Origin: Thalia democratica
Lineage: Eukaryota
Assembly: GCA_965202585.1 (NCBI GenBank)
Contig: OZ241834.1
Coordinates: 8,122,001 to 8,186,000, forward strand
Length of the DNA: 64,000 bases
Direction: 5' to 3'
The notes under the pieces were generated by a model that worked only from the letters and a program-made list of their open reading frames with translations, did not search any database and had not been told where the DNA came from. Below, in pieces: positions 3,721 to 45,249 of this stretch. The position numbers were made by a program, and so were the translations under genes. The first letter of the stretch is position 1. Every line of letters begins with the position of its first letter.

Positions 3721-4890
3721 AATAAGATAAATTTTTACATCATTTTCTTCAACTTAGTATTTGTTAAAAAAAGTTGCTAGTGTAAGATTGGAATAAAAGT
3801 TTCTATGTAGTAAGTAGACTATGTAAAAAACAAATTTTTGAGAAAATAACTACTATTTAGTTGTTTTTTTTGTTAAATACATCCTTTTGTTTTAACACTA
3901 CCTTTTACTACATATAATTGAAAAAAGTTGTAAAAATAGAGTAGATCGGAGGTTATAAAATAGCTGCTAATAAAACATAAATTTATACAAGTGTAGTAAT
4001 AAAACTTTAAATTTTCAACTAAGTTATCCTAACAAAATATAGTTTTTGTTATATTTGAAAGATATAGAAGTTGAATATTAGAATTTTTTTGTAGTAGTTT
4101 TTTCAAAAGTAAACGTTTGTACAAAAGTTATTTGATAGCTCTAAATTTAAATAAAATTTAAAAACAATCGTTTTATTATTACTTGTAGTATAAAAAACAT
4201 TTAGTAAAAAAATAACAAAAATAATAATATTTCAATTTCATGGTTTTTAAGTATACACTACAAAATAAAACTTATGTTTTCTAAATTTTGCAAAACTCTA
4301 GAACAAAAATTAAAAGCAACACTTACTTGTAACTTTGTAATAACTTAATGATTTTTACTGACCAAACTGACTTAACTTACTGATTTCAATCGTTAACTTA
4401 TAATGTTACTATAGTTCACTTATTAAAATATAACTAAAGTTTCAAATGAAAGTGTTCGTTTGTTTTCTAAAGTTAAAATATTACGGTTATTTATCTAAGA
4501 CTTGCAAATATTTAGCATTGATAGCAGAAGCATAACATTTAAACATTTATTTAGTATCACTTAAGCATTGTACTAAAATAAAATTTTCAAACATAAAATA
4601 AAACGTAAAAACTAAATATACGTTATCTTACTTTGGTCGGTAGTAAAAGCTCAATAAACCTAAATTTTGTTGAATTCAGTTTCATTAACTAATGAATATC
4701 TTTTTAGTATGACAAAAAAATAAAGCATACTTCTTGCTTTGTTTTTAATATCTCCTTAGTTTCTGTTTGCTTCAACTATGTATTTTAAACAGTTTGTGTT
4801 TTGATTTTTATCCTTTTTTAATTAAAAAAAAATTAAATTAACAATTTTTTTACATATACGTAGTAGTAAGAATCATTTAACACATTCACC

Positions 4891-5481: not shown

Positions 5482-8400
5482 GTAAAAACAAAAATTATAA
5501 TAAAAATACACAGATTTATTCAAAATAGTATAAAACACCTTAAAATAAATCAAAACAATAAACAATATATGAATGCACTATTGTTTTAGTTTGAATGAAA
5601 TGTAAATAATTTCAGGTGCAAAAAAAATATCTCAAATGTCACACAAAAAAGCGATTAAACGTTGATTAATGATGTTTTTGGTGAAACTTTTAACGGGCGT
5701 GCGAAGAAAATTAAAACAAAAGCAAAAGCCTTTTGTAAATACTTTACACTTCTGTGTTTTGCGGTCGCTACTACTTTCGTGCCAGTGATGCTGATTGTGA
5801 CGCATTGTGACGTAACAAACGTTTTGTGAGCTGAGCACCGGCTGGCACGCACCTTTGTTCTTTAATATAATTATAAATTGTCAGACATAGTTTGATCATG
5901 GCCGTGGTTTCAGACAAAAGTTTATATGGTCTAGAAATATTTATGAAAAAAACTATTAAGTTCACAAGATTCAAATAAATATTGCTTTAAATTGTCTTAA
6001 AAAAAAGTTCTAAAGTACAAGTTTGTTTTTTAATACACTACTTTTTGATAGTAACAGTTTGCAAAGTACTTTAGAAAAAAAAACTTTTTACTCCAACGAG
6101 ATCGTGTTGTTCGGATATCTATAAACAAACATCATTGGAAAATTATAACTTCTAAACTATTTGTTTTTCAAAAAACTTCAGTTTACGACCATAACTTAAC
6201 TATCATTTTAAACATTTTCTGTATGTATTCGTGTAGTTTTTTAAAAAACATTTTTATCATAATTTCAAGATATGCGGAAAGGAGTTCAAGGCGCAGTACA
6301 ATCTGACCAGACACATGCCAGTCCACACTGGAGCACGACCTTTCAAGTGCAAGATATGCGGGAAGGGATTCAAGCAGGCCAGCACATTATGTCGTCATAA
6401 AGTCATCCATTCCAAGGTGAATATTTATTTTAAGTTATATGATTTGTATAATATTATGTCGTCATAAGGTCATCCATTCTATGGTTGTAGTAAGTTGTAT
6501 GGTTTACTTGTATGATAACTTGAAAAGTTTTTAAAAAAGTAAAAAATAGTGTTAAATTAGTTATTAATTTGGTACATTGTAAGAGTATTGATAGTTTTAA
6601 AACGTTTGATAAAGTTGTAGCGAAGTAAAATTTTTAACAAATTTAAAGTTTTTGAGTTAACTTAAGTATATCTTGATGACTTGCATGTTATCTTGAGTTT
6701 TAATAACCTTAATTAAACATTAATTTAACTTTGATTGGCAGTTGAAGTTAATGATATTTAGGAAGACAAACACTGTTTTGCATTATCGATTTTTTTATAA
6801 ATAGCTTAAGTGTGCGATATTACAGTGTCCGAAATTATATTACAGCGGTAGTTTTAAACGGTATTTTAAAGTTTTTAGCAAGTTTGCATTGTCAAAGCAA
6901 ACATTAAAATAATATAGCAAACAGCTTAAACCCATCATAAAAAAAAGATCACAACTTATTTTTTAAGATACGAAAAAAAAACGTGAGATTTAAAAACAAA
7001 TTAGTGTGCTTGTTCGCAAGCCGATAAATAATTCTTAAGTGAGAACGGACTTTGGCGATATAAGTATGCGATATAAGTATGCCTTTTAAACTCCCGTGTG
7101 TTTGTTGTGAATCGAAAACACTTGTACATCGGATTACTCCATAAAACACCACTTTACACTGAAGGTGTAAGAAATCAATCGCAATTTCAGCGGACAGATT
7201 GAGCGCCATTGTAAGCCAATCACAGTTGCGATAATTCATTGTAAACCAATCACGTTCCGCGTTAAGCCGCTTTGCCACTAAAGTTCTCGTCCATCTAAGT
7301 GCTTCTGGCTTCCCCTTCAGAGCGCGTTTATGGTAAATTAATCTTCAGTGAAAAGTGATTGCTTTTAAAGTGCGATTCCGTTTTATTTTTTCTATAATTA
7401 TGCAGCAAACGGCAAAGCTGATTTAAAATTCTCTTGATCCGCGTGAAGGTTTCAATTGTGTTTGCAGTTTAAGAAAGCTTTTTGTTTCAAAAATAACTGC
7501 TTGATTGAATGTCGATCTTAAACGCAAAACAAACAGCTTTAAAATCTGAAGCAAGTTTTATCAGGGGTTTTTCTCACGGACAGAAGTGTATAGATACCAC
7601 AAAACACCTGTTTGTATTGAACTTTTAGTTTTTAAGGAGTCAGGTAGTGCATTAAGTAGATTGATTTAAGAAAACTACAAATAAAATTAATGTTAAAAAA
7701 AAACAATAAATCTAATCTACTACTTTGTTATTTTTTTTCGTAAGTGTTTAACTAGCAGCTTTGTTTAAATAAGTATTTACGTCTGCTTACAGGAGATTAA
7801 AATAAAGCCGCTGAACGTTTTTTGAACGCTTTTCTAACTAAAAAATTTTCAACTGAGAATTGTTGTTTACTAACTGTAACACATAACACTTTCTTTATAA
7901 ATTAGATACAAATTTGAAATACTTAAGTATGTAGTTCATAGCTGTTTAAGCACTTTAGCAGACATGTTTTATAGTATTTACTTAACTAATTTTTTAATTG
8001 AACGGAGAATTATTCTAAAGTTATTCTAGCTTATTTAGAAGTACTTTAGTAGTTAGAAAATTAGTGTTTAAAAACCGAAAACATTTTTGTGAAAAAAATA
8101 GTCTTTTATAAACATTTCTAGACAAGTTTGAAAATATTTCATAGAAGTTGACTTTGTATTTAAGTTAAAGATTTAACAACTTAAAAAAAAAGACACTAAA
8201 GAAGAAACTTGTTATAAAACAGTATTTTAAAATACCTAATCAAAGTGTTTTATATAATACTTTATTATACAGGCATTTTTGACTTGTTTATAAAACTCGT
8301 AGATTTATATCAACTTTGGCCTTCATAGCTTGTCATTAGAGAAAAATGAAAAGAATACTTCCAATTCATTACATAAAACCATATGGCGATAATTTATGAG

Positions 8401-11400
8401 CATTCCAAGTATTTATAAAAATGGCGAATTGATCAGTTTCAAAATACTGTATACAATAACAGAGCAATAAAACACCTGATGTAAGATACACCTATATAAC
8501 TCGCAGACTTTACAACTACATTTTATTGCTCTTATTTCATAACTTAAATAATATCTCATTAGTTTTTATTGCTTAGATCCAATAATACTAATCAATAATT
8601 TATTATTTTCTGTCTTAACATACGAGTTAAAGTTTAATTAAAATCGATGTACTGTTCTTCAAGTAGTATAACACAGTTATAAAACACCAAATAAATGATC
8701 AATATATTTTAAATACTACTCATTCAAAATTTAATATTACGATTGATTAATGAACTTAATCTAGTTGTTACGTAATTAGACTTTTTAAACTGTAGAAATC
8801 AATGTAAAGTTAAAAGTAGTATGTATTATAAAAAACAGCTGAAATAAAAATAAAAGGTTTAAAATTTTACACTGAAATACATTTCGAAAAAGTAAAACTA
8901 TTTAGTACAACTTAACAGCTTTTGAAAAGATTGAAGCATTTAAATTTGATTGTTTATAATAAAAATAAGAAACATTAAAAGATACAAAAACTTTTTTTAT
9001 CGCGTTTTAACATTTCAAATAGCAGAATAAAAACTCACTAGCTATTTATTGAAACATATTTTTAGTCTAACATAAATAGTAAAAAAATAAATCTCTCAAA
9101 AATTAAAAAGTATAAGTTTAATCAAAAAATTAAACAATAGAACATGTAATACGGATAACATTTTCAGTACATAATACAATTACTTAATAATCTCAGACAG
9201 TTTATTTTCATTAAAAAAGTAAAAATTGCCCACTTTGTGAATAATAGATAAATACTTTTCAAATTTATATTAATATGTTAATAACTAAAATAAAATAATA
9301 TATTTTGTAAAACTAGTCTAATCGATTGTTTGTACATAAATTTTAGTTGTAAGCTAATTAGAATAAAGAATCTTTTAGATAACCTTATAGAAAGAATTGC
9401 ATTTTCACAATTTATGGAGGTGTTAAATAAACTGTTTATCTAAATAATATTCGAGACTTATTTAGTTAAGATATATACAAAAGTTTTAAATTTAGGTTGA
9501 TGTTAAAGAAAAATTTAGTAAAAAATAAATGTCAGGTCAACCTAATTTGTCGAGTGTTACTTGTTACATTAGCTTATTGTTGATAAACTAAGTCAGTTAG
9601 AAACAGCATTTAGGTAAACTATTTCTTAGTTTAAAATCAAGAACTATATTTTCATTTAAACTTCACAATAACTAGAAACAATTTACAATAAAACAAATCG
9701 ATGAATGAAAAAGTTGTTCTGTTTTCCTCATAGCATAAAACAGTTGTACATATCATCACTTTTACTAAAAAACATATATGATTTAGCAAGGCTTGATCGG
9801 GATTTTACTATGAAATTTATAGCTGAGTTTAACTTCAAAACAAGTGCTTGGTAACGGGTCGGATTTTTAACGGGTTGGCTGCAGTATTAAAGTTTTAGAA
9901 ACTTTTTTAAACGTTATGTTATGCTACTGAGGTAAGGTAACAATACAGTAGTACATTAATAACATTTATACCCTGTCTATAACCCATTTTACCAAAATTT
10001 TTAAACCTTATTTATTGCCCTTAACGAACCATACTCAAAGAAAAATTGAATTAAAAAAAAGTTTCATCAATTATAACTTGAAATTAACAGAAGTTTTTTA
10101 GGAAATCAGATCGCCTTGCTTTTTAAGCCGAAAGCTTTAACGGTTGGAAAAAGTAAATTGCGTTTTGTCGTATAACGTTTACTAAAAATAACAGCTGTAA
10201 ACATAAATTCAAATAATTTTATTATTTAGTTAGCGTGTTTGCTTTTTAACGATTAAATTAATAGCATATTGGTAAAATTTTAACATATAATCATTGATTT
10301 TTGCGTCTCACTAGCAGTTGATCTACTATAATATACTCAGCATAGCTTGCCGACCCATTGTCTAAGACAACTAAATAAAGAAAATATTTTAGTAGTAAAA
10401 ACACATAAAAGTGTTTATCTTTATAAATACCATTTACCTTACCAATATGTATTACGTTATTACGTATTATAATATGTTTACTTACTAACTAACATATACA
10501 CGTAGGAGAGACCTCACAAATGCAAGGTGTGCGGGAAGGCGTTCAACCGTAGCAGCACTTTGAACACTCACATGCGTATTCACACTGGGGACCGCCCCTA
10601 CCAGTGTCAGGTGTGCGGGAAGCGGTTCCACCAGAAGGGCAACTACAAGAACCACTGTTTGACCCACAAAAAGGAAAAAGACTTCAAGTGCAAGATCTGC
10701 GGGAAGGCCTTCCATCAAGTCAGTATTACGTTTTTTTTTTATTAGAATTTTGAAATAAGGCGTTTTGTCAGGTAAAAAAAGTGTTCTGCTTTGTATTCTG
10801 GCTGTTTAAACCTTTTTTATTCCATTAAATTTTGTTCTAGCTTTTTAATTTAAGTTTCCTATGAGCATATGTTAGGACTTGCAATTCAAAAAATAAGCAA
10901 TGATAATTAAAAACTTTGTCTGTCAAAAAATACAATTTTTATGTAGTTTTGTCATGTTTTAGTATGATTAGAACGTAGCCATGCTATTAAATGATGTTTT
11001 TAATAAAAAAGTAAAAAATAAACGGTTAATACTTATACAATATTTATAAAATTATCTTAAATTTTCAACTATAAACTTAAATAACAAACTAACTGAAAAA
11101 ATGTACAATTTATAATATTTATTTTTTTATAAATGCAAAAAATGTAAAAATTGTTAAAATAATACCGCAAATGTTTTTAAATTTAGACAATAAGGAAAAA
11201 ATCACCAGCACTACTAATCTGGTTTGTTAAAAAACGCAAATTACAGATTGTTTCACAAACACAATCGGTCTTTCAAAGTTCCATTTGATTTGTTTGGCAT
11301 GTAACAATAAAAATTTCAAAGCTTGTTTTCATAATAACTAAGAAAGTAAATTAAGATTTATACTGTAGCACCTGGTTTTACAGGTGTTTTAACAAGTCCG

Positions 11401-13695: not shown

Positions 13696-16600
13696 GGCCA
13701 CAGCAAGTTGTTGGAGCTCCTCATATCAAATGGGGCGGATGTGAATGGGATGGTTTCGGTGCTTCCCCTATTTTCACTGCTGCCACTTGTGGGCGCAATA
13801 AGTGCTTGAGAATACTTATTGATAATGGTAATAACTACTATTAAATGAATGGAATTAGACATAATAACAAAAGTTGATAAAATAACTTTGACTTAACAAC
13901 TTGGTTATACATTCAATAAAAACTTAAGCTATTTAAATTTAACTCAAGGTGTTTATTGTAGACATTAAATTATGCTTTTCAATTATAAAAAAAAAGGAAA
14001 TCTTTATTTTTTAACAGATTATATAGTATAATGTAAACCATGACATAATAATAATAATACATAACGAAACACATAAACCAAAAATCTATCTACCATTTAA
14101 TTTTCAACAGACAGAGACTTTATTAGCAGTCGAAAAGTAAAAGTGCCACCCCATTGTACGAAGCTAGCAAGGAGGGACACTCTGATTGTGTGAAAACTCT
14201 TCTCGCAAGAGGGGCTGACCCCCACACCGAGAACTGCGACGGGGTTCTCCCTATACACGTTGCAGTTCTCTACGGACATCAAAGGTTAGTAACACATTTA
14301 AGACTTAGTTTTCACAGCAAAATAAGTAAAAGTATTATTGTTTTCTATCTAAATAGTGTTGAGAAAAGGTGAAGTAACAATAAAGTAAATTTTGAATTAA
14401 AGCAAATAGATGAGTTTGTTGTTATTTTTTGAGTTTAATTAATTCATCATTTTAATAATTATTGACTATTCCGTAAAAAGTTGGTTAAGTTTCTAGTAAA
14501 AAAGATAAAGTTTACTAATTGAACTAGTTCGTTAACTACTGAAAAATATAATTTAGCACACAAACTTGTATTTAAAGTGTTTAACTTTGAGTTTAGTAGC
14601 ATATTTGTAACACCTTTTTAACGAAATTAAAATTGTACAGAATACAGATGATTCTACAAAAAGTGACAGAAATCAACATAGCGGAACAGTGTGGAGTTTT
14701 CGCACTGAAATTTGCCGCGCAAAACGATCACGTGGAAATAATAGAGAATCTGCTTGATGCCGAATATGACGTCAATCACAAGATGATAACTGATAAAGTA
14801 ATTTACATGTTTGTTTGCTTTACTGATTTTTTTCAACCATGAGCATAAAACATCAATAAAAAAAAGGTGCATTAGTTAACAAATCACAACAAATGCTAAC
14901 ACGGCTTAACTAAACCCACGGTTAAAAACAAACTACTGAAACATACATGTCTTTGCTAATCATACATCGAAAAACAAGCCAACTAAAGAAAAGCAGTAAA
15001 CTGCTAAAACTTGGCTGAACAAAAACAAGAACAAGTATACCTTAAGCAAGTGGATCGTTTATAAACACAAAAGTCACTGAGAGAAGAGAACAAATAAAAA
15101 GCTGCATATTGCAGCTTAATAGCGCTGACTGTGGTCGGCTGTTACAGATCACTTTCTCCAAAGCTTGGCTTCATGCGACTCCTGACCACCATGGTAATCT
15201 TAATACTAATTATCGAAATAGGTGTTTGCTAAAGCAAGTATTAGAAAAGTATAGTGAATAAAACAAACATGTTGAAAAAAGAAAAGTGTTTAAAACTAAA
15301 ATTGGTGTTAATCTTTAATTAGATACTTACATGTCATTATTCTTCTGTAATTAATCTTTTTGAATAACGCTAGGTTTAAAATTGCTATTTGTTATAATTA
15401 TTGTACACTTTTATATTTATAGATACAGTCTTAAAAGTTTCTTACGTTTAAAACTAAACTTGTTATTTTATAAACGTATAAAAAAGATAGTTGTTCATTT
15501 TACTATTAACACAAAAAACAAAAACACACAAAATAGCTTGTCGTTTTAAAATTTAAAGCTAGCAATAAAGTAAACTTTATTTCTGCAATGCATTTAAATA
15601 AAAAAAGAATAGAAAAGTAGGTGAACAAAGTATTTTACAAACAGCTAAAACGTAAAATACTGACTTACACTACAGTAAAATTTATGGTAGTTTAACAAAC
15701 AACTTTTGACTTTAGTATATTTTTAGAAAAAATCTTTACAAACTGTAAAAACAATACTCAAACTTAAACTAATGAAGTATATTTTAAAGGATAAGAAATT
15801 AGTAGCAAAGGATAGAGCTGATGTGAATAATTGTTTAGATTGTGTGATGGGATTACATGAACACCAATTTGATCTGGACACCATAAGAAAATCTGTAAGT
15901 TAATAAATCTTTATAGTAAATTTATTTACTAATATAAAGTATTTCAGTTTATGATTAACTTAGTCGGAGTTTCTTAAACACCATTTTTAAGTTTATAAAA
16001 ATTTTGTGTACTAAAATAAATTATGACAGTTTAATTGGAGTTTCTTGAATAACTTCAGATTTAGTTAACTTATAAAAACTTATCGTTTTAAATAACTCTA
16101 TAAACATTGACGTTATAAATCTTATTAAAATAACACAATGTCAAGAAAAAAATAATGTTAATAGAAAAATAAGTAATAAAAAATCATACAGTTCTGCAAC
16201 TACCTGATAAACTATGATGAACTTTCTCGAGATTGGAGGGGAGCTGCGATTGCGTTCCTCCTAAATTTTGTTGGGAATCCTGTGAATTTATGCAGGAGTT
16301 TGTTGGAATCCGTGCATAACACTGATGAGTGGGATTACATCATCAATAAAACTGGTTTGAAACAATAACATAAAGTAATATTATAGTTTTAAAATAAAAG
16401 CACTTTTCTATTAAGTACTATAAATTAAGTTGCCGCATAAAGTAGTCATAATAAAAGCTGATATTTTCAGTAAAAAATTAAATAAGTCATTAACAAAAAC
16501 TGGTCAGTTGTCACATACTAGGTTTAAAAAAATCGATGTCAGTATGTTAGTGACATAATTGTGTAATTAAAACAACTTATTTGTAATATTATGTTTGTTT

Positions 16601-17062
16601 ACTACAATTGTGATATTCTTTTAAGAAGAAAATGACAAAAGCAAATTTGATTTTGCAAAATTTTAAAACATAAGAACAAAAGAATAAAAGGGCTTACAAA
16701 AACTTGTTTTACTTCTAGCATTCAAAAATATTTTTTAAGGATTTCTTGCTTTGAAAGCTTACAAATTAAATAATACTATTAGTGAGTTATTTTTACTAAA
16801 TTTAACTTAAGCTTTGTCTTCGGTCACTTTTAAGTTTTCATAAAATATATCTATCTACTTAGATTGAACGATTTTTTACTACTGATTCTTATTTTAGTTA
16901 CGGCTTGAAACTTTCAACGGTATACAAAAAAAACTTTTTTAGCATTTATGCAGATTGAAAATAAGAGAAGCGATAGGATACAAGAACTTATCTAAAAACA
17001 ACATGATTTTGATGAGCATGCAATTACCTGATCTTGTTAAAAGTTTTCTCGATTATCAGTAA
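13696..17062 (+). pseudogene. Asb2/14/15: Ankyrin-repeat and SOCS-box (ASB2/14/15-like) gene fragment, 5'-truncated and frameshifted; exons ~13696..13827, 14111..14284, 14641..14797, ~14920..15194 (decayed), ~15790..15894, 16192..16354, 16943..17062
   Basis: Peptides GHSKLLELLISNGADVN, ATPLYEASKEGHSDCVKTLLARGADPHTENCDGVLPIHVA, FAAQNDHVEIIENLLDAEYDVN, ADVNNCLDC, FCNYL...LLNFVGNPVNLCRSLLESVHNTDEWDYI and HLCRLKIREAIG...QLPDLVKSFLDYQ* follow the order of the recalled ASB2 C-terminal half. Lesions: 4-nt deletion in the first exon, 1-nt deletion in the second, start of the SOCS exon missing. Confidence 0.85.
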
Positions 17063-18049
17063 ACTTAAATTGTTTGAACAAGTTTTAAACTACTTAGTAA
17101 CCTGATTATATCTTTCGTGTACAAGTTATGCAGAATGATTTTCTAAAATTTATGTCATTGTGCTTTGTATAGTTTTTATACTTTAAGTAGTTAAGTTGAA
17201 AAAAAAGTCAAACTGATTACAAAAACGAAAAAGATGAAGTGATTTTTGTAATTAATTTTACAAGACTTTAGTTTATTCACAGTTGTACAGTCACTTTGTA
17301 TTTTTTATTTACTTAAGTTTATTTGATATTTTGTAAATAAAATTTGAAGTTGTATTATAACTTACTTACTTACTTATAACTTACTTAATTACTTGTTTAA
17401 TTACAAAAGTTTTGTTAATAAACTAAAAAAGCGTAGTAAAATTAATTTACATTGCATTCAACTTATAATTATTTATAAGATAGTGTTAATTAGTGTTTGA
17501 AAACGTAATTTTAATTTTTTATTTTTATGCTAAAATAGTAAGTACTAATATGTGATAGTAATTATTAAAACTGTTTTTATAATTTGCGTAAAAAAGTTTA
17601 CACTTTTTATTTAGAAGTAAAAAGGACATTGTTTTTATGATAAAAGGTTCCAACTCTTTTTAAAAGTTTTAGAATAAAAAATTATTTTCGATTAAGATAA
17701 AAAAACAAGTTTTTGATTAGTTTTTGTACTAGATTATGTGTTTTTAACAAAATAAAGTTTAAACTAACTTTAAAAGTTATTCTGTGTATAAACTGCTAAG
17801 TTCATAAAAAAAAGTTTATGTATAGTTACAAAATAATTTCAATTTGAACATACAATAATGTTTTAAATTTAATCAGATTAGACTTTTAATTTCTAGTTAC
17901 AATTTAGTCTATGTAAACACGAGTTATTAATTCTAGGAGCATACAACTCTTTAGAATTTTTAAAAACGATTTATTTTGTAGTTTCCAAATTTATTATTGT
18001 TTCTTGGCTTTGCAAAAAAAAGCTTTGAACTATTTTTTAATAATACAAA

Positions 18050-18424
18050 CAGCGATTCGTAACCTGGGGTAAACTTACCCCTAAGAATAAAATCCCTTGT
18101 TTTAGGGGGTAATTTTTTTGTATTAAAAATTATGTAAATTAATGTTTATTAGTTGTCTTTTCAATTTCTAAGTTAGTATCTAGTTGTTTTTTTGATTTAT
18201 AAGTTAGTATCTAATTGTTTTTTTTATTTTAAATAAACTCTTAAAAATTTACGTTTTTTCTATTTAAAAAGGTTAAGTTCAAAAAAGATATTGTTTCCCC
18301 TAAACTTAACACTATTTTGTACATTGGGAGTAAGTTTGGTTATTACCTTCTAAAAAGAGGTAAATTTGTTATTAACTTTACAAAAAGGGGTAAAACATGA
18401 AAAAAAAAAGGTTAAGAACCGCTG
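18050..18424. mobile_element. Non-autonomous hAT-type element (MITE), ~375 bp
   Basis: Terminal inverted repeats CAGCGATTCGTAACCT ... AGGTTAAGAACCGCTG; repeated GGGGTAA subterminal motifs; target-site duplication not recognisable. Confidence 0.7.
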
Positions 18425-18601
18425 ATCTAGCTTAAAAAAGATGATTTAAATTAGCAATTTAGAAACTAGCTTTTTTACTGTGATAAAAAAATCAGCTTTG
18501 ATTATGAACTTTATAAAATACACAATAAATAAAGATTGCCTATTAACAAAACAAGAAATAAAAACTGGTTATTTTAAAGAATAAAAAACTAAAGAATTTA
18601 C

Positions 18602-20053
18602 ATTTTAAAAGCACGAACGTATTCGGAAGTGTCAAAAATATGTAGCAAGTTTAAACTTAAACCTTGAATTAATATTTGAAAAGCCCTATTATCACATTAG
18701 TTATCCTGCAGCCTTGTTTAATACAAATTTACAATGAAAGTAAAAACTTTGATTAAAACTTTATATAAATAAGTAACTAGTTTCAAACACAAAACGAAAC
18801 CTTTGAATTTTTACATAAAGTTTTGAGAGTTAAAAAAATATATTATTTTAAGTTCAAAATATTTAAAAAATTATTTATAAATTTTTGAATTATGTTCTAC
18901 TGTATGAATAAATACTTAAAATACTTAAAAAACAATTGATTTTAATGCAAAAATATGCGGCAAGTCACTGTGTCACAAAAGTTTATGTACTGTATTATTA
19001 TTTTGTAAAGGTATTTGTCATAGTTAACTGAACATTTTTGGCATCCCAGATTCTTGCATTAAACCATTCGTCTGGACTCGATACTGTTTGTGTTTTCCAA
19101 TTTTTTTTATTAGAATACTTGTGTGTGTTTTATGATAAAAATGAATTTAGTTTTCTTACATAAACACAAGTGTTTAAATAATTTAAATTCATCACTTGAT
19201 AACGCACTAATTTTTGTAAACTTAAACATAATTTAAACCTTTTTTAATATAACAGTTTTAGGAATTTAAAGTAAAACATAATTATTAAATAAGTTAATCT
19301 AACTTCCTTTAGAAGATCCACAATTTGAATAATATTTTGAAGTTCCAAACTGAAAACCTTCTTCTAATATTATTTCGCTATTAAGGGGGAGATACTTGAA
19401 ATGTTATTATATATAGTACATATACAATTGCTCTACAGTTATTTTAATAACAATAACAATATTTTTAAGATCAGTAATGAGTTTTTTCATAGCTTTTGAA
19501 ATAATTTAAATTTTAAAACATCGTTAAAATTGTTGTAATGTTTATTTTTGTTACATAATGACCTTTTATCGTCGGCTTATGTACTTCGAACTTTTTACAA
19601 CATAAATTATTATTAGTTCAAATAAATTGTAAATTTTATACAGTTTTAAAAATGTCTAGTCAATGACAAAAATACATTACTCTAACAATTTAGCCAAGAT
19701 TTAAAAAAAGAACTCGAACAAAAAAGTTTCTTAATGCACTTACTTTACACATTAATAGATTATAATTTAAAATAAAACAAATCAAACCAATTTATTTATT
19801 GTTGCGCTGGTTGAAATATTTAATGAAAGTCGCTAGTAAAAATTATTTGAAATTAATATTTGTGATAAACAACAGATACTATTTAAATAGTTACCTAAAC
19901 CTATCAATTAATTCAAGTAAGATAAAAATACCTGGTTCGCATCAAACTGGATATCATCTTTTGAGCAAGGCAGTTTTCCGTTCTTCCAACGCAAAACGTC
20001 TTCGAACTCAAAAGTTTATTAAAACTTGTTTTTAGTTAAAATTTAAACATATA
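18602..20053 (-). pseudogene. AMN: Amnionless (AMN)-like gene fragment, decayed; exon-like pieces 19932..20053, ~19545..19590, 19307..19394, ~18960..19100, ~18602..18712
   Basis: Minus-strand peptides in AMN order: FEDVLRWKNGKLPCSKDDIQFDANQ|gtattt, GHYVTKI, ag|YLPLNSEIILEEGFQFGTSKYYSNCGSSK (88 nt), DEWFNARIW and IFDTSEYVRAFK. These resemble recalled human AMN [49 protein letters not shown]...DCG and SWHDPHLW. In-frame stops and broken splice sites are present. Confidence 0.7.
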
Positions 20054-21453
20054 CTAAACTTTATCTAAACTTTATGCGTTTTAAAAAATAAATTTACATT
20101 TTTTGTAGCATAACTAAAATATTGTTAACTAATAAATTAAGAATAGTAAAATGCAATGTTTAGAATAAATAAACAAACTGTTCTCAATAAAATATAATTT
20201 ATAAGCAAAAGTTAAAAACGCTATAACTAATGTTCTGTAAAGTCTATTTTTTTGTAATATTTTGTGAAGTTGATATTCAAAGAAAAATTATTACTTCTAT
20301 AAAAAAATTATCTAAATAACACAAATTAAGTCATTTTCTAAGCTGTTAGCTCGTAAGTTTGTGTGAATAGATAGACAACATATTCATAAAATTTATGATT
20401 AAAACTCGAGTATTTATGTTACTTTGACTTGGTAGACTAAAAAATAAATTTATAAAAAGTAGTATTAAATTTGCTTCAAGAGGAACTTTAGTCAAATTTT
20501 CTTTCTTAAATATATACTAAAAAATTCATTTATTACAAACGATAACAAAAACTAAACAATTTTAGAATGAATAGCTTTCATAGAATTTTATTCATTAAAT
20601 AAGGTTTACTCTAGTTGTTGTATAAAAAAGTTAAAACTACTATAAACAAGTACAAACTATAAGCGAATAATTGCATCTGTAATAAATATATAAATGTAGT
20701 AAACTTACTTAGCGAAAATAAAACACTTAAGATAAAAACGTTAAGCATCGTAGTATATAAAATATGAAATAAAAATTAAAATTTAGAAAAAATTAAAGTT
20801 TTTATTAAACATGCTTTATCAAAAATTAAAACAAAAGTATATATTATGTGAGCATCTAGCCTAAATAGTTAAGCGTTGTCATAATATTTGGTAAATAATT
20901 AAAACATAGTAATTGTGTTTTTATTTTGTAAACAAAGCAAAATAGTTTTACAGTTTAAATAAATAAAATTTATTTTGTCAGTATTTTACTGTTGTTATTG
21001 TTGGTGTTGTTTTTTATTCGCATATATGCGTAACACATTTGTTTAACTATATAAAACTAATACCAATTTTTTTTAATATTCTACAGCATTTACTTGTTAT
21101 CTTTTTAAATTTTCAGACAGATTAACTTTTTTCAATTTAACTTAAGAAAAATTTTTCACTTTATAAGGATTTTGTAATATTTAAATTCTTGAAATTAAAT
21201 TCTACCTGTTACTTAAAGTATAAGTTCAACGTTTTAGTATTTGTAAAAGTTTGAGCACTGTTGAAAATATTAACGAAACTAGTTGTATTAAAATAGTTTT
21301 GAATTATTTTAAACAAGTAAAAGTGTTACCACTTTAACAAATAAAGATATTCTTCTGAATAATGAAAGAAATTTAAAAAACTGCTAGTTGTAGCATTTGT
21401 AACATTAAAAAAAGTTATAACTGTTTGAACAAAGCCTTAAACGTTATATAGTT

Positions 21454-22467
21454 GGAACGGGTCGGAAAAGCACGGGCGTCACTTTAGCACATAGTGACAC
21501 TTTAGCACGGGGTGATACTTTAGCACTGAGTGACACTTTAGCACAGTATGACACTTAAGCACGGATTGACACTTTAGCACAGAGTGACACTTGAGCACGG
21601 AATGACACTTTAGCACGGCGTATTTTTAGCACGAAGTGAAAATTTAGCACGGAGTCACACTTTAGCACAGAGTGACTTTTTAGCAAGGCATAAATTTAGC
21701 ACATGGCAACACTTTAGCACGGCGTCACTTTAGCATGGACTGCAACTGTTTTTTATGCTTACATAACATTGTTAGTGTTATGTTTAAATATATAAAACAA
21801 TCTATGCAACATGTATACTAAAAGTTAACGAGCTTTAAATATGTTACAAGCTAAAGCTTTGTCTTACAATTTACTCCTTACTTAACTATAATTTTAAATA
21901 AAAACAACTTTGGTAGATATACTTCCCGTTAAATTAACAGTTAGTTTAAAGTGCCAAAAATGCGTAATCAACATGATGCTGACCTAATAAAGTTATATTT
22001 TAAACAGTTTAATAAATATACTCTTAATTAGTATTTAATTTAATTACTTAGTAGTATCAAACGTGCTAAAGTGTAACTCCGTGCTAAAGTGACGCTGTGC
22101 TAAAGTGTCACCCCGTGCGAAAGTGTCACTCCGTGCTTAAATGACGCCGTGCGAAAGTGTCTAGCCGTGCTAAAATGATGCCGTGCTAAAGTGTCACGTC
22201 GTGCTAAAGTGTCACTCCGTGCTTAAGATACGCCGTGCTAAAGTGTCACTCTGTGCTAAACTGTCACTCCGTGCTTAAGTGACACTGTGCTAAAGTGTCA
22301 TTCTGTGCTTAAGTGTCACTCTGTTCTTTAGTGTCACTCTGTGCTTTAGTGTCAATTTGTACCAAAGTGTCACTCTGTGCTAAAGTTTCACTGCGTGCTA
22401 AAGTGTCAACCCGTGCTAAAGTGTCGACCCGTACTAAAGTGACGCTGTGCTTTTCTGACACATACCC
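21454..22467. mobile_element. Foldback-type element: outer TIRs plus inverted arrays of a ~17-bp unit around an AT-rich loop
   Basis: Left end GGAACGGGTCGGAAAAGCACGGGCGTCACTTTAG mirrors right end CTAAAGTGACGCTGTGCTTTTCTGACACATACC. GTGACACTTTAGCACGG-like units run at ~21477-21745 and their complement at ~22062-22450. Flanks ttatatagtt / ttttatagta may be a degenerate 9-10-bp TSD. Confidence 0.8.
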
Positions 22468-25400
22468 TTTTATAGTATTTACTTTTTGATATAAAAAATT
22501 TAAGTTTGTTAATTTTGCTTTTGTACTGATATTACAGATTTCAAGAATTAGTCAGTTATTGTATGTCATTCTTGTAGTTTTGATAGGTAGAAAAATACTG
22601 ACAATGTTAAAGAAAACTAGTAATTGTGTTAATAGTTTAAGGCAATATTTAATGAATTTTTTAAGTGAGATAACAAAAAACGAAAAACTTTTTTCTTTTT
22701 ATTTCTAATAAGTTACTAAATAAAGTTTATATGTTTTAATAAACCATATACGAGGATCATACAATAATAAATTTTTGCTATATATAGTTAGAATAAGAAC
22801 TTATATAAAAAATATAGAAATCTGTCAATTTATAAGTACTTATACTTTAGAAAATAAAGTTTTAATAAATTTAAGTATTACCACAAAACTACTTGATTTT
22901 ATAAGATTTTTCTAAATTATACGAGTACATAAATAGTTTTCTAATTAATAATAAAATGTTCTCAGTGTGATGGAACTACTACAAAATAAATTACAAACTA
23001 ACTTAAAGCTTTTATAAAGTTACTTAACTCAAAACTTTCTTAAGTAGACCTACTTCAATAAAAAAGTTTTTTTGCACTTCGTATCCATTCAAAGAAAAAC
23101 AAAAATCGGTAAACTTTTAAAACTGTTTTTTTTTTATATATAAGCTGCAATTGTTTTTTGGTGACCAAGTAAAACAAATTTTTTTAAATATCATATGTTT
23201 AAATTTAAGTGTACATTTCAAGAAATTATTATTAAATGAGTACGTTTTACGATTAATATTAGGTAACTGTTAATAGTTTAGTTGAATATAACTTTAAAAG
23301 ATGCTTACTTCAAGTAAAAACTGTGGTAAAATCTTTTGAATCACAATATAACAGTCAAAATTTGGATTTTAAAGTTATAATTATTATTTATACTAATACC
23401 TACAGAAAATAAAGTTTTCAGAAGTTCTAATAAGGAGTATCAAATGTTTAAGTAAACATTAGCTTGTATAATCATATACAAGTCTTAAGTTTTAAAATTC
23501 ATAAAAACGTATTCAATTTTAAGTTTTTGCTGTGAGAAAAGTTTAGTTTTTCATTCTATACGTTAAAAAAAAGACTTTAAGTATATTAAGGAAACGTATA
23601 TAAAGATGCACGTTTTTCAACTAGAAAAATTTATTGTTTTAAACGAACTCAAAAGTCAGTTTGAACTTGACTGATACTTAACGGTTAGTTTAAACAATAG
23701 AAAAATTCTCAGAATTTTTTGTCAAAACTGTTGATTTATGATTAAAATTTGAGTTTATCACGTTTTTTATAAGCTATAAAAAAACGCGTAGGCTAATTAG
23801 CAGATGCTATTTTATTTCTATCTTGATATACTTTTAAATCTTTGTTATTATAAGTGTGTTTAAAACAAACTTAACAAGCAAATAATTGTATGAAGCCCTC
23901 TCTAACATTTATTTAAATTACGCTAAGTTGCCAAGTACATCCATATATATAAAGTTGCCTTTAAAAACGCAGTTTAAATTGATACCAACTGATAAATTGC
24001 ATACCCACACTGATTTTAATGTAGTGATATAAAAAACTTTTAACTAGTAGTATGTCCAAAATACGGCGATTGTTCTAAATATTGTTTACTTTTAATAGAC
24101 TCTAAATTGATTTTAATACAAAAAGCATTTAAACTGCAGACAAATCTAGCAAAAAATGTAATTTATTTTACAAATACTTTTAAATACTTCCTTTTTTAAT
24201 CCAAAGTACAATATGAAATTTTTAACTTACTTAAAAAATATTTTATATCAATTTTCTTACTATTTTAAATCTTTTTATACTTAAAGTATTACTCAATAAT
24301 TAATACTATATCTATTTAAATAAAATAAATGAGCTTAGTTATACTTTTATTACAAAGTAAGTACAAAAATTTAATTACATCTATCAGAATAGGAGCAAAT
24401 AGCAAGAAAAGTTAATACAAATTACAACTTTAAAATAGTATAAGTAAAACAAAAGTTTCTAAAACTTATTCTTATGTTGCAAATGTTTTTGGTCCGCTTT
24501 AAATCTGAAATTATTATGAAAAATTTAAACTTACAGCTATTATACAACGGTTAGTTAATTTCATTAATACATTTAACTAAAATTTTGAAACAAAATTTAA
24601 TTTTACATCAACTTTATTATGCTTAAATTTCGGGTACTCCCTTAAAAAATTGCACACTTTGTAAATACAAGCTAGGAGTTCTACAAATAGTATTATTTAA
24701 ATTATCTTAGTATTTTTGGTTGGTAAATATAAATACTTTTCATAGTAAGTTTTTATTTTATTTAGTAAAGTAAACTTTAAGGTAGCACTGCCTTTTTTGT
24801 ATGATTAACAAAAACAATGTCAGACTTATTTTTCTTAACTTATTAACGTTTTACTTTATAAAAGTTTAGATAGAAAGAAAATACTTGTTTTTTATTAATT
24901 TAACTAGAAATTAAAGTTTGATTGGAAAATTTAAGAACAAAAGCTATTTTGTTCTTGAGTTACCTTGCTACTTAAATAACAACTCTTATGACTTTTCAAC
25001 AATGGTATAGTACTCTAAAAAAGAGTAGCGTAAATACAAAATAGTTTCTATTAACACCTTTAATAGATTAAGTTAAACATTTTTAAGAAGATATATACAA
25101 TATTTAAAACCATCAACATCTTATAATTATTTACTAGTTTAAATTTACAGTAATTACCTTTATTCTTTAAAAAAGCATTCAACTTAAATATGTCAAAACA
25201 ATATTTTAAGTTATTTAACGATTTGGTATAAAGTTGTTTCTTATGTAATACAAGTTATGATTATAACTAAATAATCAAGAATGAAAAACAAGGGTAAAAT
25301 AGATGCTTCACTTTAAAATAGCAACAAATTTTTTTCAGAAAGTTAAATGTTGTAAACTATTTGTCATACATCCTGTGATTGTTTTTTATACTGAAAAACC

Positions 25401-25725
25401 GCTGTGTTTTTCAAGCCATTCAGTTTATTAACAACAACACTTTTAAAACGTGGTGAAATAAGTTTTAGTATTTTTTAGAGCTTGAATAAAACGCGTATTT
25501 GTTTTTAATTGATTTATTAGCTTTTTTAGTTTTAAGTTAATATGAAAAAAATACATTTTATTTCGTTAATTTTAGTACTACTTACCAAATACAATTTAAC
25601 AACTATTTCAAATCTAAAATTTCATAAACTAAATATAAATGTAAGTAAAATGTAGTTTATATTTTGTTATATATTAGCAAATCTTGTCACAAGCAGTTTT
25701 AAGATTAGGTAAGAACTATGTAAAG

Positions 25726-25881
25726 CAGTGCTACTGAACCTATTCTAGTGGCGGAACCCTTTTCCAAAGTTCAACTTTTCCGCGGAACCCCTAATTTTAA
25801 TTTTACATAAAATGTTTAATTAAATAAATATTCTTTTTTAAGTTTCGAAAGGCTTTGCGGAACCCCATTTCAGAAGCACTA
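25726..25881. mobile_element. Small hAT-type MITE, 156 bp, 8-bp TSD
   Basis: Ends CAGTGCTACTGAA ... TTCAGAAGCACTA; flanks ATGTAAAG (25718-25725) and ACGTAAAG (25882-25889); GCGGAACCC three times internally. Confidence 0.8.
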
Positions 25882-26099
25882 ACGTAAAGTGTACAAATGG
25901 AAGTGAAATTTTTGTTATTTTCTTGCTGATCAAGTCACAAACAGTTTTTACATCAAATAAGAAATCAAATAAAACAAACAATATTAGAAATATTTTTTAC
26001 ACTAATAAACTAATAAGTTTATAAAATTTAAAATTTAATTCTTGAGCTAAAAAACCTGTGAAACAGTTTAATAATAAACTTTGAATAATTAACAAGTTC

Positions 26100-27010
26100 A
26101 TACAAAAAACCCACAAAACAATTTACGATCCGTTTTAAAGCCCGTCAAAAGGTGATCTTGCCTGCAACCTTTTCATATAGAAATTGGAAGCAAATTTATT
26201 TTCACAACAATCCGAAGCTAATTAGCTCGCGCGCGCGACACAAGTAAACAAACGCAAAAGCGCAAGAAACAAAAGGTGAACTTTTGCTTCGTTTTTAAGA
26301 GTCTCGGGTTTTAATTGCTCTCTAATGACCTGTATGCTGAAAGTTTAAAGAAATACTTTCCTTCCGATTTTCACGTTTTGGTATTCTGCAATATACACTT
26401 GTCTCCTGTTGGGTGGCCTTCAACGGCAAAAATAAATTGAGTATTTTTTGTTTATGCTTTTTGTCACTTTAAATTAAATTGGCAAGGAGCAGTGTTGTGT
26501 GATGAGACAAAAATACAGCTAATCCTTGCTCGTCATGGTTTAAAAATAAAAATTTTGAAAATGTTTCTACACTACTTATTTTTTAAGTTTTCTTCACCAG
26601 CGGCGAGTCTTTAAAACGCTTTAAGTAAAGTGATGCACTTAAATTAAACTCTCGTCTCTGTGACGTAATAGCGCAGATAAAAAAAGGCGAGAGGTGCTCT
26701 TAAGCGACAAGATATACCGATTGGTTTTTGGCAGCGCGTCGAATCGGATTTGTGCTTATGCTTGTGAGATCCACAAGTTTGCAGGTAGCATATAATGTGG
26801 GTGGTCCAAATCACCTGAGAAGTTGAACACACTGAAGTGAGAAGTTGAAAGGGAATTGAATGCCGACTTTTGTTATTCGCCGCTAATTTTGATCGGCCCG
26901 AACGATACGTCGCTCAAAATTTTTTGCTGAAAAACCACCCAAGGTGGTAATCTTGTGAATAAAGATGCTCGGTTGTTATTTTTGTGCGTGTATCAATTGT
27001 GAGTCTTTTT
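26100..27010. promoter_or_regulatory. CpG-rich non-coding island upstream of copy B
   Basis: Local GC/CpG rise, (CG)n run at ~26227, GTAAACAAAC, CAAAAGGTGA twice; no convincing ORF. Confidence 0.3.
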
Positions 27011-27909
27011 GTATTTTGCATTTTATAGTTTGAAGAAAAAGTAGTTTTCTGCAGAGTTCACATGTTGGTTTTACACCAATGGTGTTTTTGTTGATCTGAT
27101 TAAGCATTTGTCACAGACTTAAATGATGTTTAATTATTTTAATACCGCTTATGCAAATTAATTTCATTTTTTTAACTTAAACTGTATTTCTAAGCTTTTT
27201 TTTTTAATAACTTTAAAATAAACTGCTCAAAACATAAACTTTTAAAACTCTAAAACAATTTTTCTCATGAAAATTTAAAAAAATTAGTAGCAAGTTTTTT
27301 GTACAAATTGAAATCGCAAATGATCAAACTCGCATCAAAAAGAACTTATTTAGAATAAGATCGTAAACTGTATATTAATCTGCAAAAAAACAGCGATAAG
27401 GACATTCTAAACATGTTTTAATACTTTTACAACTTATATCTAACCAAAAATTGTTTTTAAAACTTCAAAACATCTAAAAAACTAAATTTCATAAAATATT
27501 TTCAAAAGTTCAAGGCTTTTTGATAATCTATAAATGCATTGAAATTATTTTTCATAAAGCTAAAACATTTTTGTTTCTAAACAACCATAATTATTTTTTT
27601 TATAAAGTTTTATTTAAAAAATTTATGTATTGACTTTATTTTTTGTATATAATTGACTATATTTTTACTCATTGAAAGTCTTGAAGTTAAAAATTTATCT
27701 CACATCACTACCTATAACTCATTAACGAGCTTTTAATATTGAACTAAGTTATTTTTTCAACTAAAGTTTCAGCTTTTTTCTATTAGTTTTATTTTCAATG
27801 TAGTTTTTTTATTATTATAACGTATTAATTTTTGCACTGTAGTTAATTAACATAAACAACTAAAATATCACTTATGATTAAAGTGTTTAATTATTTTTTA
27901 ATTAATTAT

Positions 27910-28141
27910 TTAAATACCAATTCAGCAAGAAACACATTCTACGTTTAAAATTTATTCGCATGACGACGTTTCGATTTTCAATAAGTCATTATCAACAAAA
28001 TACTCTGCAAAAATAAATAAAATTAGTGATAAACAACTAAGTATACAAAAAAAATTTCTAAGTGACTTATTGAAAGTCGAAACGTCGTCATGCGAATAAA
28101 TTTTAAACGTAGAATGTGTTTCTTACTGAACTGGTATTTAA
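27910..28141. repeat. Near-perfect inverted repeat (79-bp arms, 74-bp loop); MITE-like hairpin
   Basis: 27910-27988 versus the reverse complement of 28063-28141 differ at 3 positions; both ends are TTAA. Confidence 0.85.
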
Positions 28142-31089
28142 AAACTCCAGTATCCCCACCTGTTTTTTAATTAATAATTTGTTTTAAATTAAAGAATTTT
28201 TTTAGTTTATTCTTATTGTGAAGCTTTATATACTTTTGGTTTTTTAAATCATTCATTAAAAAAAAAGACATTTCAACTGCAAAATTGTTATTTCAGTTAG
28301 GGAATATTTGAAATACTTAAGAACAGTTTAAATAAAAAAAACGCTTAACATCAACAAAGTTAATCTTTTAAAGTTCAGACAACAATAGCAGTTTTAAAGA
28401 ATTTTCAATATATTAAATTTTCTATTACCTGCAGATATACACTATATAAATATAATCGTATATTATATATTGTACATTAAATTTCAGTATCCTAAGTAAA
28501 AAAAAATATTAAATAAAAGACATGTAAACTAAGCTCTTCAGACACATAAGTATATGCATAAACAATTTTTTTCTGAAAGTATTCCTAAAACATTAACTTG
28601 AAAACCTCATTGTATATTTTGCCTTTGTAAAAAAACACATTAAGTATGTATAAATCTTTTAATATGCATATTGTAAAGAAACGTTCTTTTTAAAGTTAGA
28701 ATACGAATTATTCAGATACTTGATTTAAGAACTAATGGTTACGAAACAACATATTTTTTAAGAAAACATTTGAAACAAGCTTTGTTGAAATGTTTATTTA
28801 AAGACAAACACACAAATAACTTCACATCAGTAATGCATCCTATTAAAATTTTAGGCAACAATACGTACATAAACAATCTTTGTTTATAACTTTATTGTTA
28901 AATGCTTTGAACAACTTGTTTACTTTGATTTAAGCTGGTTTTAATTTATTTTTTAGTGAGTGTTTTAATTTTTTAATTGCTGAAGAAAGAAATTAAATTA
29001 GAAAAAATAGCTTAAAATTTTACATATTTACATTGCATAAAGTTATACAGTGTAATCAAAATTTTTGGATGTTATAAAATAGTTTCTTAAAACAATAAAA
29101 TATATCTTATTATACTGTTATAAATTCATAAACAAACAAAAAATTCTATTTTTGTTCACCGTCCATACAAGGAAATCTCTACCTTCTGCCGTCTTTTTCT
29201 TCTTCTCTCTTCTATTCGGCTTCCCATCTGATGAGCGCTCATTACAATTTCATTAAGCCGATGATGAGGCTGTAAAATGGCGATATCTAAACACTTTTCT
29301 TAAGTAGACTGCTCATTACAGCTTCAGTTAGGTTACGTTTGTTGCTTTTTGCTTGTTTTAATATTTTGAAGTTTTTTATGAACCTTATGATTTTTTAAGT
29401 GATTAAAAAATAGTGGTCAAGGTTTGCATTTTTAGGTTTTTTAAGGTATTTAAAATTTGATTTAGTATAGACTTGTTTTCATCTAATTAAATTTAGAAGG
29501 GTACAAAATTCTAAGCATTTTGAAAACATTACGATTTTAAACTAATTTAAACTATTTAGTTTTTTCAGTAATTTTTTCTTAACACAACTTTTTGGGTATT
29601 AATACATAAAACAATGTCTTTGATTTATCAGTGTAACCTGAAACTTTAGTAGTGTTAATTAGTTATGTTTTCACTTTTATGAAACTTTATAAAAAAGGGG
29701 TATGAACAAAATATTTAAGATTAATCTTTGTTCAAAAACAAAGACGAATCTTATAGTTTACCTAAAAGAACCTGCAGCTGTAGGAAACTTGCTGATTATT
29801 TGAAGATATTCAGGTTTAAATATATCAAACTAGTATTTTGTTTTTTTGTCTAAACATTATTTAATACATTTTTTAACATGTTGTCTAATAAAAAGAAAAT
29901 TATAAAAGTAAAAATAAGTTTTTAGTACATAATTGTTAGTTTAAAATAAAAAAAAGTAAAATAATTTCTAACTCTAAAAGAGTAGCAGAAAACAATAGTA
30001 ACACAAAAATCAAAAACGCTCTGAGTATGTTATAAAGTTATAGTGCTAAATGCATCTTTTGAGTATATAGTATAAGTACTATAAATAAAAATGACAGTCG
30101 TTGAAGTTAATACTGATTAATATGTTTTCGTAAACACAAGCAATTCATGCTAGTTTAAATCGTTTACAAATTTGTACAGTAATTATTACAAGCAAGTTCA
30201 AAATGTAAAGTTCAAAAGCTATAAGTAAAGTGTAAACAAGTTTATATAACGTTAGATATCCAATAAAAATTATCTACTTTACTCTATTGCAAAATTGTGA
30301 CGCGCAGAGTTTAGATTGGAGATAAATGGCTTTTATCGATATTTGCTCGTAATAACTTCACCTAAACTATAACTTGTCTACTCTACCACCGTGGTCTTCA
30401 ATTGTATCGTGGTAGGACACTTTCAGTAATAATTTGTTTTACAAAATACTGTAAATACCAATGATTATTTTAATTTTAAGAGTTTAGAAGTTGAAATAAA
30501 GTACTATTTAAAAAAAAAATCTGCTGCTTTTATGATTGCATATGCGTCTCTTTATGTAACGTTTTAATTAAAAATATTAAAAATAAATTTAAGTCAGCAT
30601 CTACATTGAATTTAATTTGTAATGAAATTAGTATACAAACCTTCAAAAAAATCAATGTAAAAGTTTTAACAAAGGTTTTAATATAACTATAGCTCTAAAA
30701 ACTTAGGAATCAAGTTTTTTATTTTATATATTTTTTATACAGTTATAAAATACAATGCAAAAGATAAATATATTACTCATTAATTTTTTTTTTATAATAT
30801 TAAAGTAATAAATTTAGAACAAAAAAAAGTATATAAATAACTTATGTCTTCGTTTGTACTTTAATATTAAAGTTCAACTTAAATAGTTGTTAGTGATTTA
30901 TAACTTAATTTTTTTGTCGTGATGAAAATTTTTTAACTAAAAAAATAAAAAAACAATTAAGTTAAAAAAAAATTTTGTTTACAAAAAACGTACCAACTAT
31001 ACAATATTGTTTTTAACGGAAAAATGACGATCTAAAAAGTAACCGCAGAAAAGTGATTCACTCAATTCAATTGTTAATCTATTTTACGT

Positions 31090-43076: not shown

Positions 43077-44598
43077 CTTAAAACTATATGAAGTTTACGC
43101 GTTTTTATTAAACGACCGTTTTTATTGTATCACTTAGTTTGAATTTTGATTTACGTTTTGTTTTTGTATACGAAAAATTTTGGTACGTTGTTCCAAAATT
43201 TAATTAGTGCTAGACTCTAGTTGTGTATAAAAAAAATTAAAAGTAGTTTACTTAAACATCTTAAAATATTTATATCAATATAAGATATTTTTAAGTTACA
43301 AACTTAAGGTCTGATATGTGAAAATACTTATTCTCACAAATTTATAAACTGTTATGTCTATAATTCATTATTCACTTCAAAATTATGAAAAAAATAATAC
43401 GAAAAAAAAAATTAATGGTACAAACTAGCAACAGAAAAATATACCAAGTTTACAGTTATATATTTAAATCTAACAGTTTCGTTTTTTTCTTATAAATATT
43501 GAAAGTTGTGAAGAACATTTAAATATTTATAATTTAGTTGAACATAAAATCTTGTTACGACTCTATGCTAGCTTAAATTGAAACTTTGTTTATTTAGCGT
43601 TAAAAATTAAATTAAACTTTAACTTTAGTAAAGTACATTTACTTACACTTGTATTATAAGTAAAATACAAATATTGAAAACCTAATGAAATCGTATATCT
43701 GGTTCAAAAAGTTTCCAAAAATACAAATATTTTAATGTCGGTAACAAATCTTTCCTTTTAAAACATTTTGTGCTTTACTTTTACACAAAACATGCTCTTA
43801 GCTTTTTTTAGTTTTAATCTTTTGTTACTGAAAAAGGTAGAATGTAATATTTGAGATGTAGATTTGACCATAATTAAAAACTTTATTTTTAACAGTGATT
43901 TCACTGTGACCAGTTAGTAAATGGTAAAAAAAAACTATCCTCAACGGAATTTTTTCTTAGATTTATTTTTAAGAAAACCAATATGTTATAATTTTTTTAT
44001 TTATTAGTAAAGAGTAAATAAAAGTTTCTAGAAACAATAAAATATGTAACAAATACATTTTTTGGTAAATTGTATAGAATTCACAAATTTTTGTACTATT
44101 TAAATTTATTCTCTCACTTTATGTTTGTAAAATAATTAAAATTTGAACACGAGAAAATAACAAACTGTTTCAAATTTTGTTATCAAGCATTTTTTATATT
44201 TATTTTGAGCGCCTAAATTGCAGTATGCTTAAAAACTTAGTATTTATTTGCTATTAATTATTAATTGTAATAAACAAGGTTTTTTCAAAAAATAATTGCT
44301 TAAAAACAAATTATGAAGTGTAAGAAAAGATGAAAGAGTCATGACGGATAAAAGTCTTAATTCGAAAACAAAAAAGTAGATTGATTTGTATAACTTGAAC
44401 TGAATGAGATGTGTAGTTTTAGGCAAAAACATTACTAGTGGTTGATATTAGTGGTAACTTTATTTTATTATATCAGTCTAGAATTAAGTTATTAAGCATT
44501 TAGTATGGTAATCATCAGAATTAAGTTTAGTATTTTATCGTATCAAATGTTTAAACTATTATACGAACAAAAATTTGAAATGATTTTTTTTAACACTA

Positions 44599-44915: not shown

Positions 44916-45249
44916 ACAACAAGCAAAATGCGTCATATAAAACATACTAAAATAAATAATGTTTAGACGACGTTTCTAAAACTATTAAGATCAAAATGTA
45001 ACTGTTTTAATTTTTTTTCTCTTAAGTTTAAACCTAAGTGAGTATTTTTTATATAGTTTAAAATGTTTTATGTAGTCTAGTTTTAAAACATTGTAACATC
45101 TTTGCTGAGACATATTTCACAATAAAGTAAACATTATTAAATTCTAAATTTATCTTTATTTTGTTATATCATACTACTTATCTCGCTTTAAGTTTACGCT
45201 GTTTCAAGAGACTATTTAAATTTTAAGAGAAAACTGTAAAAGCTACGAT

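Follow-up and report, generated by a model that had tools for sequence, protein, structure and literature searches.

Does the genome of Thalia democratica hold a second amnionless (AMN) gene, hidden among the zinc-finger genes of contig C10, or only what is left of one? The question is raised by short exon-like pieces on the minus strand of a 64-kb stretch of this contig (C10:8122001-8186000, hereafter the window; positions given without a contig name are counted from its first letter). The DNA is AT-rich, with 23-32% GC, and contains no N. A preliminary description had read four peptide pieces, placed between 18602 and 20053, as a decayed AMN relic carried by a duplicated unit, and suggested looking for an intact parent in the rest of the genome.

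An apparently complete parent was found. The Pfam Amnionless profile (PF14828) was searched in six frames across the whole 802-Mb genome, and a cluster of matches, ordered as in the profile, was obtained at C10:7892197-7894813. The gene to which they belong extends over C10:7.890-7.8956 Mb, on the same contig and the same strand, about 247 kb upstream of the window. Its exons are collinear with the profile: exon A matches profile positions 4-36, exon E 121-157, exon F 162-209, exon G 204-260 (52.3 bits, versus a cut-off of 30.4, together with a weak VWC match) and exon I, which encodes the transmembrane region, 312-364. Exons B, C, D and H, each scanned against Pfam, gave no match. Exon G was also similar to human AMN in the PDB (6gje_A, E=7.9e-6), in an alignment that covers the CC..CG motif.

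Splice sites of the parent were read off the sequence, by canonical AG/GT and by phase. The gene predicted in this way has 11 exons (1, A of 125 nt, B of 36 nt, C of 91 nt, D, E, F, G, H, I and J), with canonical AG/GT at every exon boundary, consistent phases and no internal stop. Exon 1 is 40 nt long (MLKVFILSVLFSL) and ends on the donor AA/gtaagt in phase 1, which fits the phase-1 acceptor of exon A; exon J carries the stop codon after ..SFPNISYHEEDL. The exon lengths sum arithmetically to about 439 codons. A cysteine-rich VWC-like module, the CC..CG region, is encoded by exons F-G, and exons I and J are present as well. The sole other Amnionless-like match in the genome (27.9 bits, under the cut-off) lies at C2:40004311-40005763 (L014:4311-5763), in a gene with several VWC (chordin-like) repeats that is not AMN. 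This leaves the gene on C10 as the only complete AMN gene of the genome.

Compared with this parent, the AMN sequence of the window occupies positions 20748-19029 of the minus strand. By blastn, window 19029-20017 aligns to positions 7800-8806 of the parent locus (L009) with 84% identity, and the window is collinear with the parent locus from 15779 to 29493. Alignments with the parent and with the sister copies described below place the introns of the relic at the parental positions.

Five exons are represented. Exon 1 (20748-20709) begins with an ATG at 20748 and the start of a signal peptide, MLNVFILSVLFSL plus 1 nt, in phase 1. It shows a single difference over 40 nt (K>N) in the alignment with parent and sisters, and its predicted donor, AA/gtaagt, is unbroken at 20708-20707. 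Exon A is reduced to 86 of its 125 nt (20017-19932, coding ..TFEFEDVLRWKNGKLPCSKDDIQFDANQ), with an unbroken donor CAG/gtattt. One of these 86 nt is mismatched to the parent exon, to which 31 aa align at 97% identity in tblastn (E=1.3e-17). The same remnant matches positions 10-33 of the Pfam Amnionless profile with E=0.006 and 15.9 bits, under the 30.4-bit cut-off. Exon B (19590-19555, 36 nt, FEVHKPTIKGHY, phase 0 to 0, putative acceptor aaaaag/ and donor /gtaaca) matches the parent exon at all 36 nt (tblastn E=6.6e-13); its limits were set by the sole canonical in-frame GT. Exon C (19394-19304, 91 nt, YLPLNSEIILEEGFQFGTSKYYSNCGSSKG plus 1 nt, phase 0 to 1, putative acceptor ttcaag/ and donor GAA/gttaga) is the homologue of human AMN exon 4, which we take to begin with LLPL at the very place where exon C begins with YLPL. 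It is 79% identical to the parent over 34 aa (tblastn E=3.7e-14), and its 11 mismatches over 91 nt are mostly non-synonymous. Finally, the first 55 nt of exon D are found at 19083-19029 (..SSPDEWFNARIWDAKNVQ, putative acceptor aaacag/, tblastn E=9.9e-8), where a 12-nt indel at the acceptor, relative to the parent, keeps phase 1. The relic thus retains about 308 of about 1320 coding nt.

All four peptide pieces named earlier are contained in these exons, on the minus strand and in the order first given, and they are the segments to which the above tblastn values for exons A to D apply. They are FEDVLRWKNGKLPCSKDDIQFDANQ/gt at 20006-19932, ..KGHYVTKI.. at about 19566-19543, ag/YLPLNSEIILEEGFQFGTSKYYSNCG.. 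(YLPLNSEI..SNCG) from 19394, and ..SSPDEWFNARIW.., which includes DEWFNARIW, at about 19071-19045. Their amnionless origin is upheld by the paralogy to the C10 AMN gene; piece 1 is also the only one that matches the Pfam profile. The span had been set with an offset, for 18602-19028 is non-coding 3' flank, and exon 1, at 20748-20709, had been missed.

Several details of the exon boundaries had to be revised. In the second piece, the peptide VTKI can be read in the sequence, but its coding status was not borne out: GHY/gtaaca is the only canonical in-frame donor of exon B, so that VTKI is probably intron. Four codons past the exon B donor (19543-19554; parent L009 about 8330), it resembles the motif GHAVSDM, which is presumably that of human AMN; the likeness may reflect a 12-nt ancestral shift of the donor, or coincidence. 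The donor of exon C had been considered broken (g/gaagtt at 19306). The exon in fact ends 3 nt further, at GAA/gttaga, as it does in the parent (AGAA/gttaga), and three sisters read gtaaga; the misreading came from forcing 88 nt onto a 91-nt exon. The length of 88 nt is correct for human AMN, in which exon 4 (88 bp) is skipped, with a frameshift, as a result of the c.208-2A>G change in intron 3 (PMC3226546). Exon C starts at the same residue as human exon 4 and has the same phases, 0 to 1, but it is 91 nt long.

The window copy differs from the parent by two deletions. The first, of 3.8 kb, has its junction at 19028/19029. By blastn, window 18810-19027 corresponds to parent 3790-4013 and window 19029-20017 to parent 7800-8806, and what is missing is parent L009 4014-7799, that is, the rest of exon D and exons E-J. 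With these exons went the sequence for the cysteine-rich VWC-like module, for the transmembrane helix and for the tail. When parent exon segments were searched by tblastn over the whole 64-kb window, none of exons E-J was found: the window contains no homologue of exon I or J (transmembrane helix, cytoplasmic tail), nor does it contain the cysteine-rich VWC-like module. Next to the junction lies a non-coding flank (18473-19027, minus strand) whose homologue lies downstream of AMN at the parent locus (blastn, 71% to L009 3561-4013), and the frame of exon D continues into this foreign sequence up to a TAA at 19000-18998.

The second deletion, of 64 nt (69 nt versus the parent; L009 8806/8876), has its junction at 20017/20018. 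It took away 25 nt from the end of intron 1, and with them the CAG acceptor, as well as 39 nt from the start of exon A. The sequence TAATAA at 20021-20016 arises at this junction. These two stops had already been seen, and they had been attributed to decay of a Trp codon; they are indeed present, but they are a product of the junction, and the parent reads ..GRTFTKTFEFEDV.. (TFTKTFEFEDV), with no Trp.

The consequences for expression can be predicted. If the phase-1 donor of exon 1 were spliced to the nearest AG ahead of the exon A remnant, the product would be out of frame and would then meet a stop. There is no continuous open frame across the canonical splice sites of the window copy. As it lacks the membrane anchor and the endocytic tail as well as the cysteine-rich module, this copy cannot make AMN, and for want of a membrane anchor it is implausible that it would bind cubilin or transport it to the membrane.

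The A-D fragment is present in eight copies genome-wide, all of them on C10: the parent (84% identity) and seven relics (95-100%). The relics are located at C10 positions 7947834, 7974949, 8031757, 8059434, 8087573, 8114047 and 8141029, the last being the window copy. They are interleaved with 11 plus-strand copies of a C2H2 zinc-finger gene, the last of which is inverted. The zinc fingers resemble those of Fezf. The array covers C10:7.89-8.20 Mb, with a unit of about 27-28 kb, and the window is its right end; on the left, the array is adjoined by the complete AMN gene, just left of the first Fezf copy. Spacing between relics is 26.5-28.1 kb, except for 56.8 kb where a unit of another type, described below, intervenes. 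Part of the array is a higher-order repeat of three units, about 84 kb long (7922106 = 8006002, 7947834 = 8031757, 7974949 = 8059434). The idea of a decayed AMN relic carried by a duplicated unit was thus supported, both by the collinearity of window 15779-29493 with the parent locus and by the seven relics, one per unit. It did not hold for a second site that had been suspected at 43500-46000, where tblastn found no AMN exon. There, the inverted unit has only faint flank homology, down to about 45591, and the direct second unit shows no homology past about 43076, short of the position of the relic.

The intervening type of unit carries the other end of the gene. At C10:7.921-7.923 and 8.005-8.007 Mb (L011:3591-6034 and L012:3835-5880), exons G, H, I and J are present, and exons 1-C are not. 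The four exons are 82-92% identical to the parent at the amino-acid level. In these 3' relics there is an in-frame stop inside the transmembrane stretch of exon I, and another in frame just past the coding part of exon H. They also hold a 435-nt piece of the 5'-relic unit, consisting of flank, 3.8-kb junction and start of exon D, which looks like the outcome of illegitimate recombination between the two unit types. In addition, an old inverted remnant of exons I-J was found at C10:8194133-8195134, beyond the window and to the right of the array. Two units keep exons G-J instead of the 5' exons, which makes it most likely that AMN was duplicated as a whole and was then trimmed in different ways by deletions. 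The earlier wording, that the duplicated unit had captured part of AMN, is probably inexact.

Comparison of the window unit with the parent unit also brought up two features outside the relic. About 0.7 kb upstream of relic exon 1 lies an inverted pair of arrays of an 18-nt minisatellite (21469-21739 and 22062-22451, about 15 and 22 copies); this block of about 1 kb is missing from the parent unit, in which position 10322 joins 10343. Further on, window 25886-27112 is 93% identical to the parent unit, versus 83-86% in the neighbouring blocks. It contains no long ORF, and might correspond to conserved non-coding DNA or to the small exons of a different gene.

Taken together, we consider that window 20748-19029 is very probably an unprocessed, truncated AMN pseudogene. 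The following order of events is proposed. The first duplication of the Fezf unit would have taken the adjoining AMN gene along, and the 3.8-kb deletion would then have stripped the extra AMN copy of exons E-J and of the latter half of exon D. What remained at the 5' end (exon 1, A, B, C and the start of D) would have been passively amplified with the Fezf units, giving rise to the seven relics, which are 95-99% alike. The junction of the 3.8-kb deletion is common to all seven, as is the 12-nt indel at the acceptor of exon D, which indicates that the truncation is older than the amplification. In a sub-lineage that includes the window copy, the later 64-nt deletion would have removed the acceptor of exon A together with 39 coding nt. 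This deletion is found in the window copy and in the copies at C10:7.9478 and 8.0318 Mb only; the segment is kept in three sisters and in the parent. In exon C, the window sub-lineage reads AAA TAT TAT and the other relics GAA TAT TTG.

The sisters have lesions of their own. In the copies at 7.9749, 8.0876 and 8.1140 Mb, a CAG codon of exon A is changed into TAG, and the 8.0876 Mb copy has an additional, different rearrangement at the 5' end of exon A. Among the 5' relics, only the copy at 8.0594 Mb (L018 = C10:8058934-8061414; L013:4340-6200) is open from exon 1 to the 5' part of exon D, with canonical splice sites, over a stretch that amounts arithmetically to about 125 codons. It invites the hypothesis that the 5' relics form a young family encoding, at least in the 8.0594 Mb copy, a short secreted N-terminal AMN fragment, made of the signal peptide and about 110 residues. 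In a variant of this hypothesis, the relics would be kept as transcribed non-coding or regulatory elements of the Fezf array, and the window copy would have been disabled recently. Even when the two are taken jointly, we regard them as improbable, for reasons that come from the lesions and from the pattern of substitutions.

Between parent and relics, mismatches amount to 5-6% in exons and 20% in introns. Some of the substitution data favour these two hypotheses. Over the 122 nt of exons A and B there is one mismatch to the parent, against 8-26% in the introns beside them. Among six relics, compared over window 18530-20748, 13 of 305 exon columns are variable, versus 131 of 1388 intron columns, so that exons are about half as variable as introns (Fisher test, p=0.002). 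Preservation of the phase by the 12-nt indel at the exon D acceptor points in the same direction. Lower variability of exon columns is not obviously expected of a strictly neutral pseudogene family, although this is a minor point.

Other data do not fit with a maintained product. Disabling lesions occurred independently and affect six of the seven copies (the 64-nt deletion in three and the nonsense change in three, one of which is also rearranged), and exon 1 of the window copy is not predicted to be spliceable in frame to exon A. The exon changes among relics are mostly non-synonymous (about 3 synonymous, 9 non-synonymous and 1 nonsense). Moreover, variability in intron B (7.8%) and intron C (6.4%) is about as low as in exon C (5.5%); low variability is therefore not specific to exons. 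The parent-relic pN/pS ratio is about 0.5-0.7, which would be the value expected if one lineage were constrained and the other neutral. GC content is 32-43% in exons A-D, 23% in exon 1 and 18-20% in introns, and the lower exon variability is possibly due to composition, to heterogeneity of mutation or of alignment, to copying between units, or to weak constraint.

We find it very unlikely that the truncations are artefacts of assembly in a repetitive array, and that the window truly contains a complete second AMN gene. The deletion junctions do depend on the assembly, and units that are 90-99% alike over about 28 kb are hard to assemble. Among public runs, none of RNA was found to contain the stretch; the short contigs of three DNA-type runs cover the region, show no exon-exon joints and, with a break at 20016 beside the 64-nt junction, leave the deletion junctions unbridged. 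However, an identical 3.8-kb junction recurs in seven copies that are otherwise 2.5-5% different from each other, and the 64-nt junction recurs in three. Genome-wide, nothing but the parent and the diverged 3' relics (68-84%) was found to contain the deleted 3.8 kb, and there is no unplaced copy of matching age.

As for a chance likeness of short AT-rich open frames to AMN, pieces B, C and D taken alone do lack any Pfam match, and phmmer of the window pieces against the PDB gave no AMN match, but this idea is refuted by tblastn E values down to 1e-17 and by DNA paralogy (84% over 1 kb, with collinear flanks) to a locus that scores above the Pfam Amnionless cut-off. The window pieces are too short and too diverged for a PDB match, and the case for AMN rests on the paralogy to the parent.

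The truncated pseudogene that we favour can be compared with the functional family. Like Amnionless proteins (AMN; PF14828), of which human AMN in the cubam complex (PDB 6GJE) is an example, it keeps a signal-peptide exon and N-terminal exons, in the parental order. It differs in having lost the acceptor of the second exon, so that the frame is not maintainable; the signal-peptide exon can still be recognised by its sequence, and no in-frame splice onward from it is predicted. As judged from its sequence, the window copy is derived from AMN by clear paralogy, and it is not a functional member of the Amnionless family.

In all essential respects, it behaves as other unprocessed (duplicated) pseudogenes do. 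It has introns, the tandem duplication in which it sits takes in the parent locus as well, it was truncated by deletion and amplified with the unit, its sisters carry independent lesions, and the parent-relic pN/pS is intermediate. It is unusual among duplicated pseudogenes in that seven 5' relics, two complementary 3' relics and one old inverted remnant are found in one array, and in that exon columns are somewhat less variable. Neither AMN pseudogenes nor an invertebrate Fezf array turned up in our search of the literature. It is well known that tandem arrays can contain partial copies of genes, and the relic is best regarded as an ordinary by-product of tandem duplication.

For annotation, the pieces in the window should be marked as AMN pseudogene fragments and not as a gene, the sole AMN gene being the one at C10:7.890-7.8956 Mb. 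The relics are also markers for the history of growth of the 11-copy Fezf array, in which shared deletions delimit sub-lineages.
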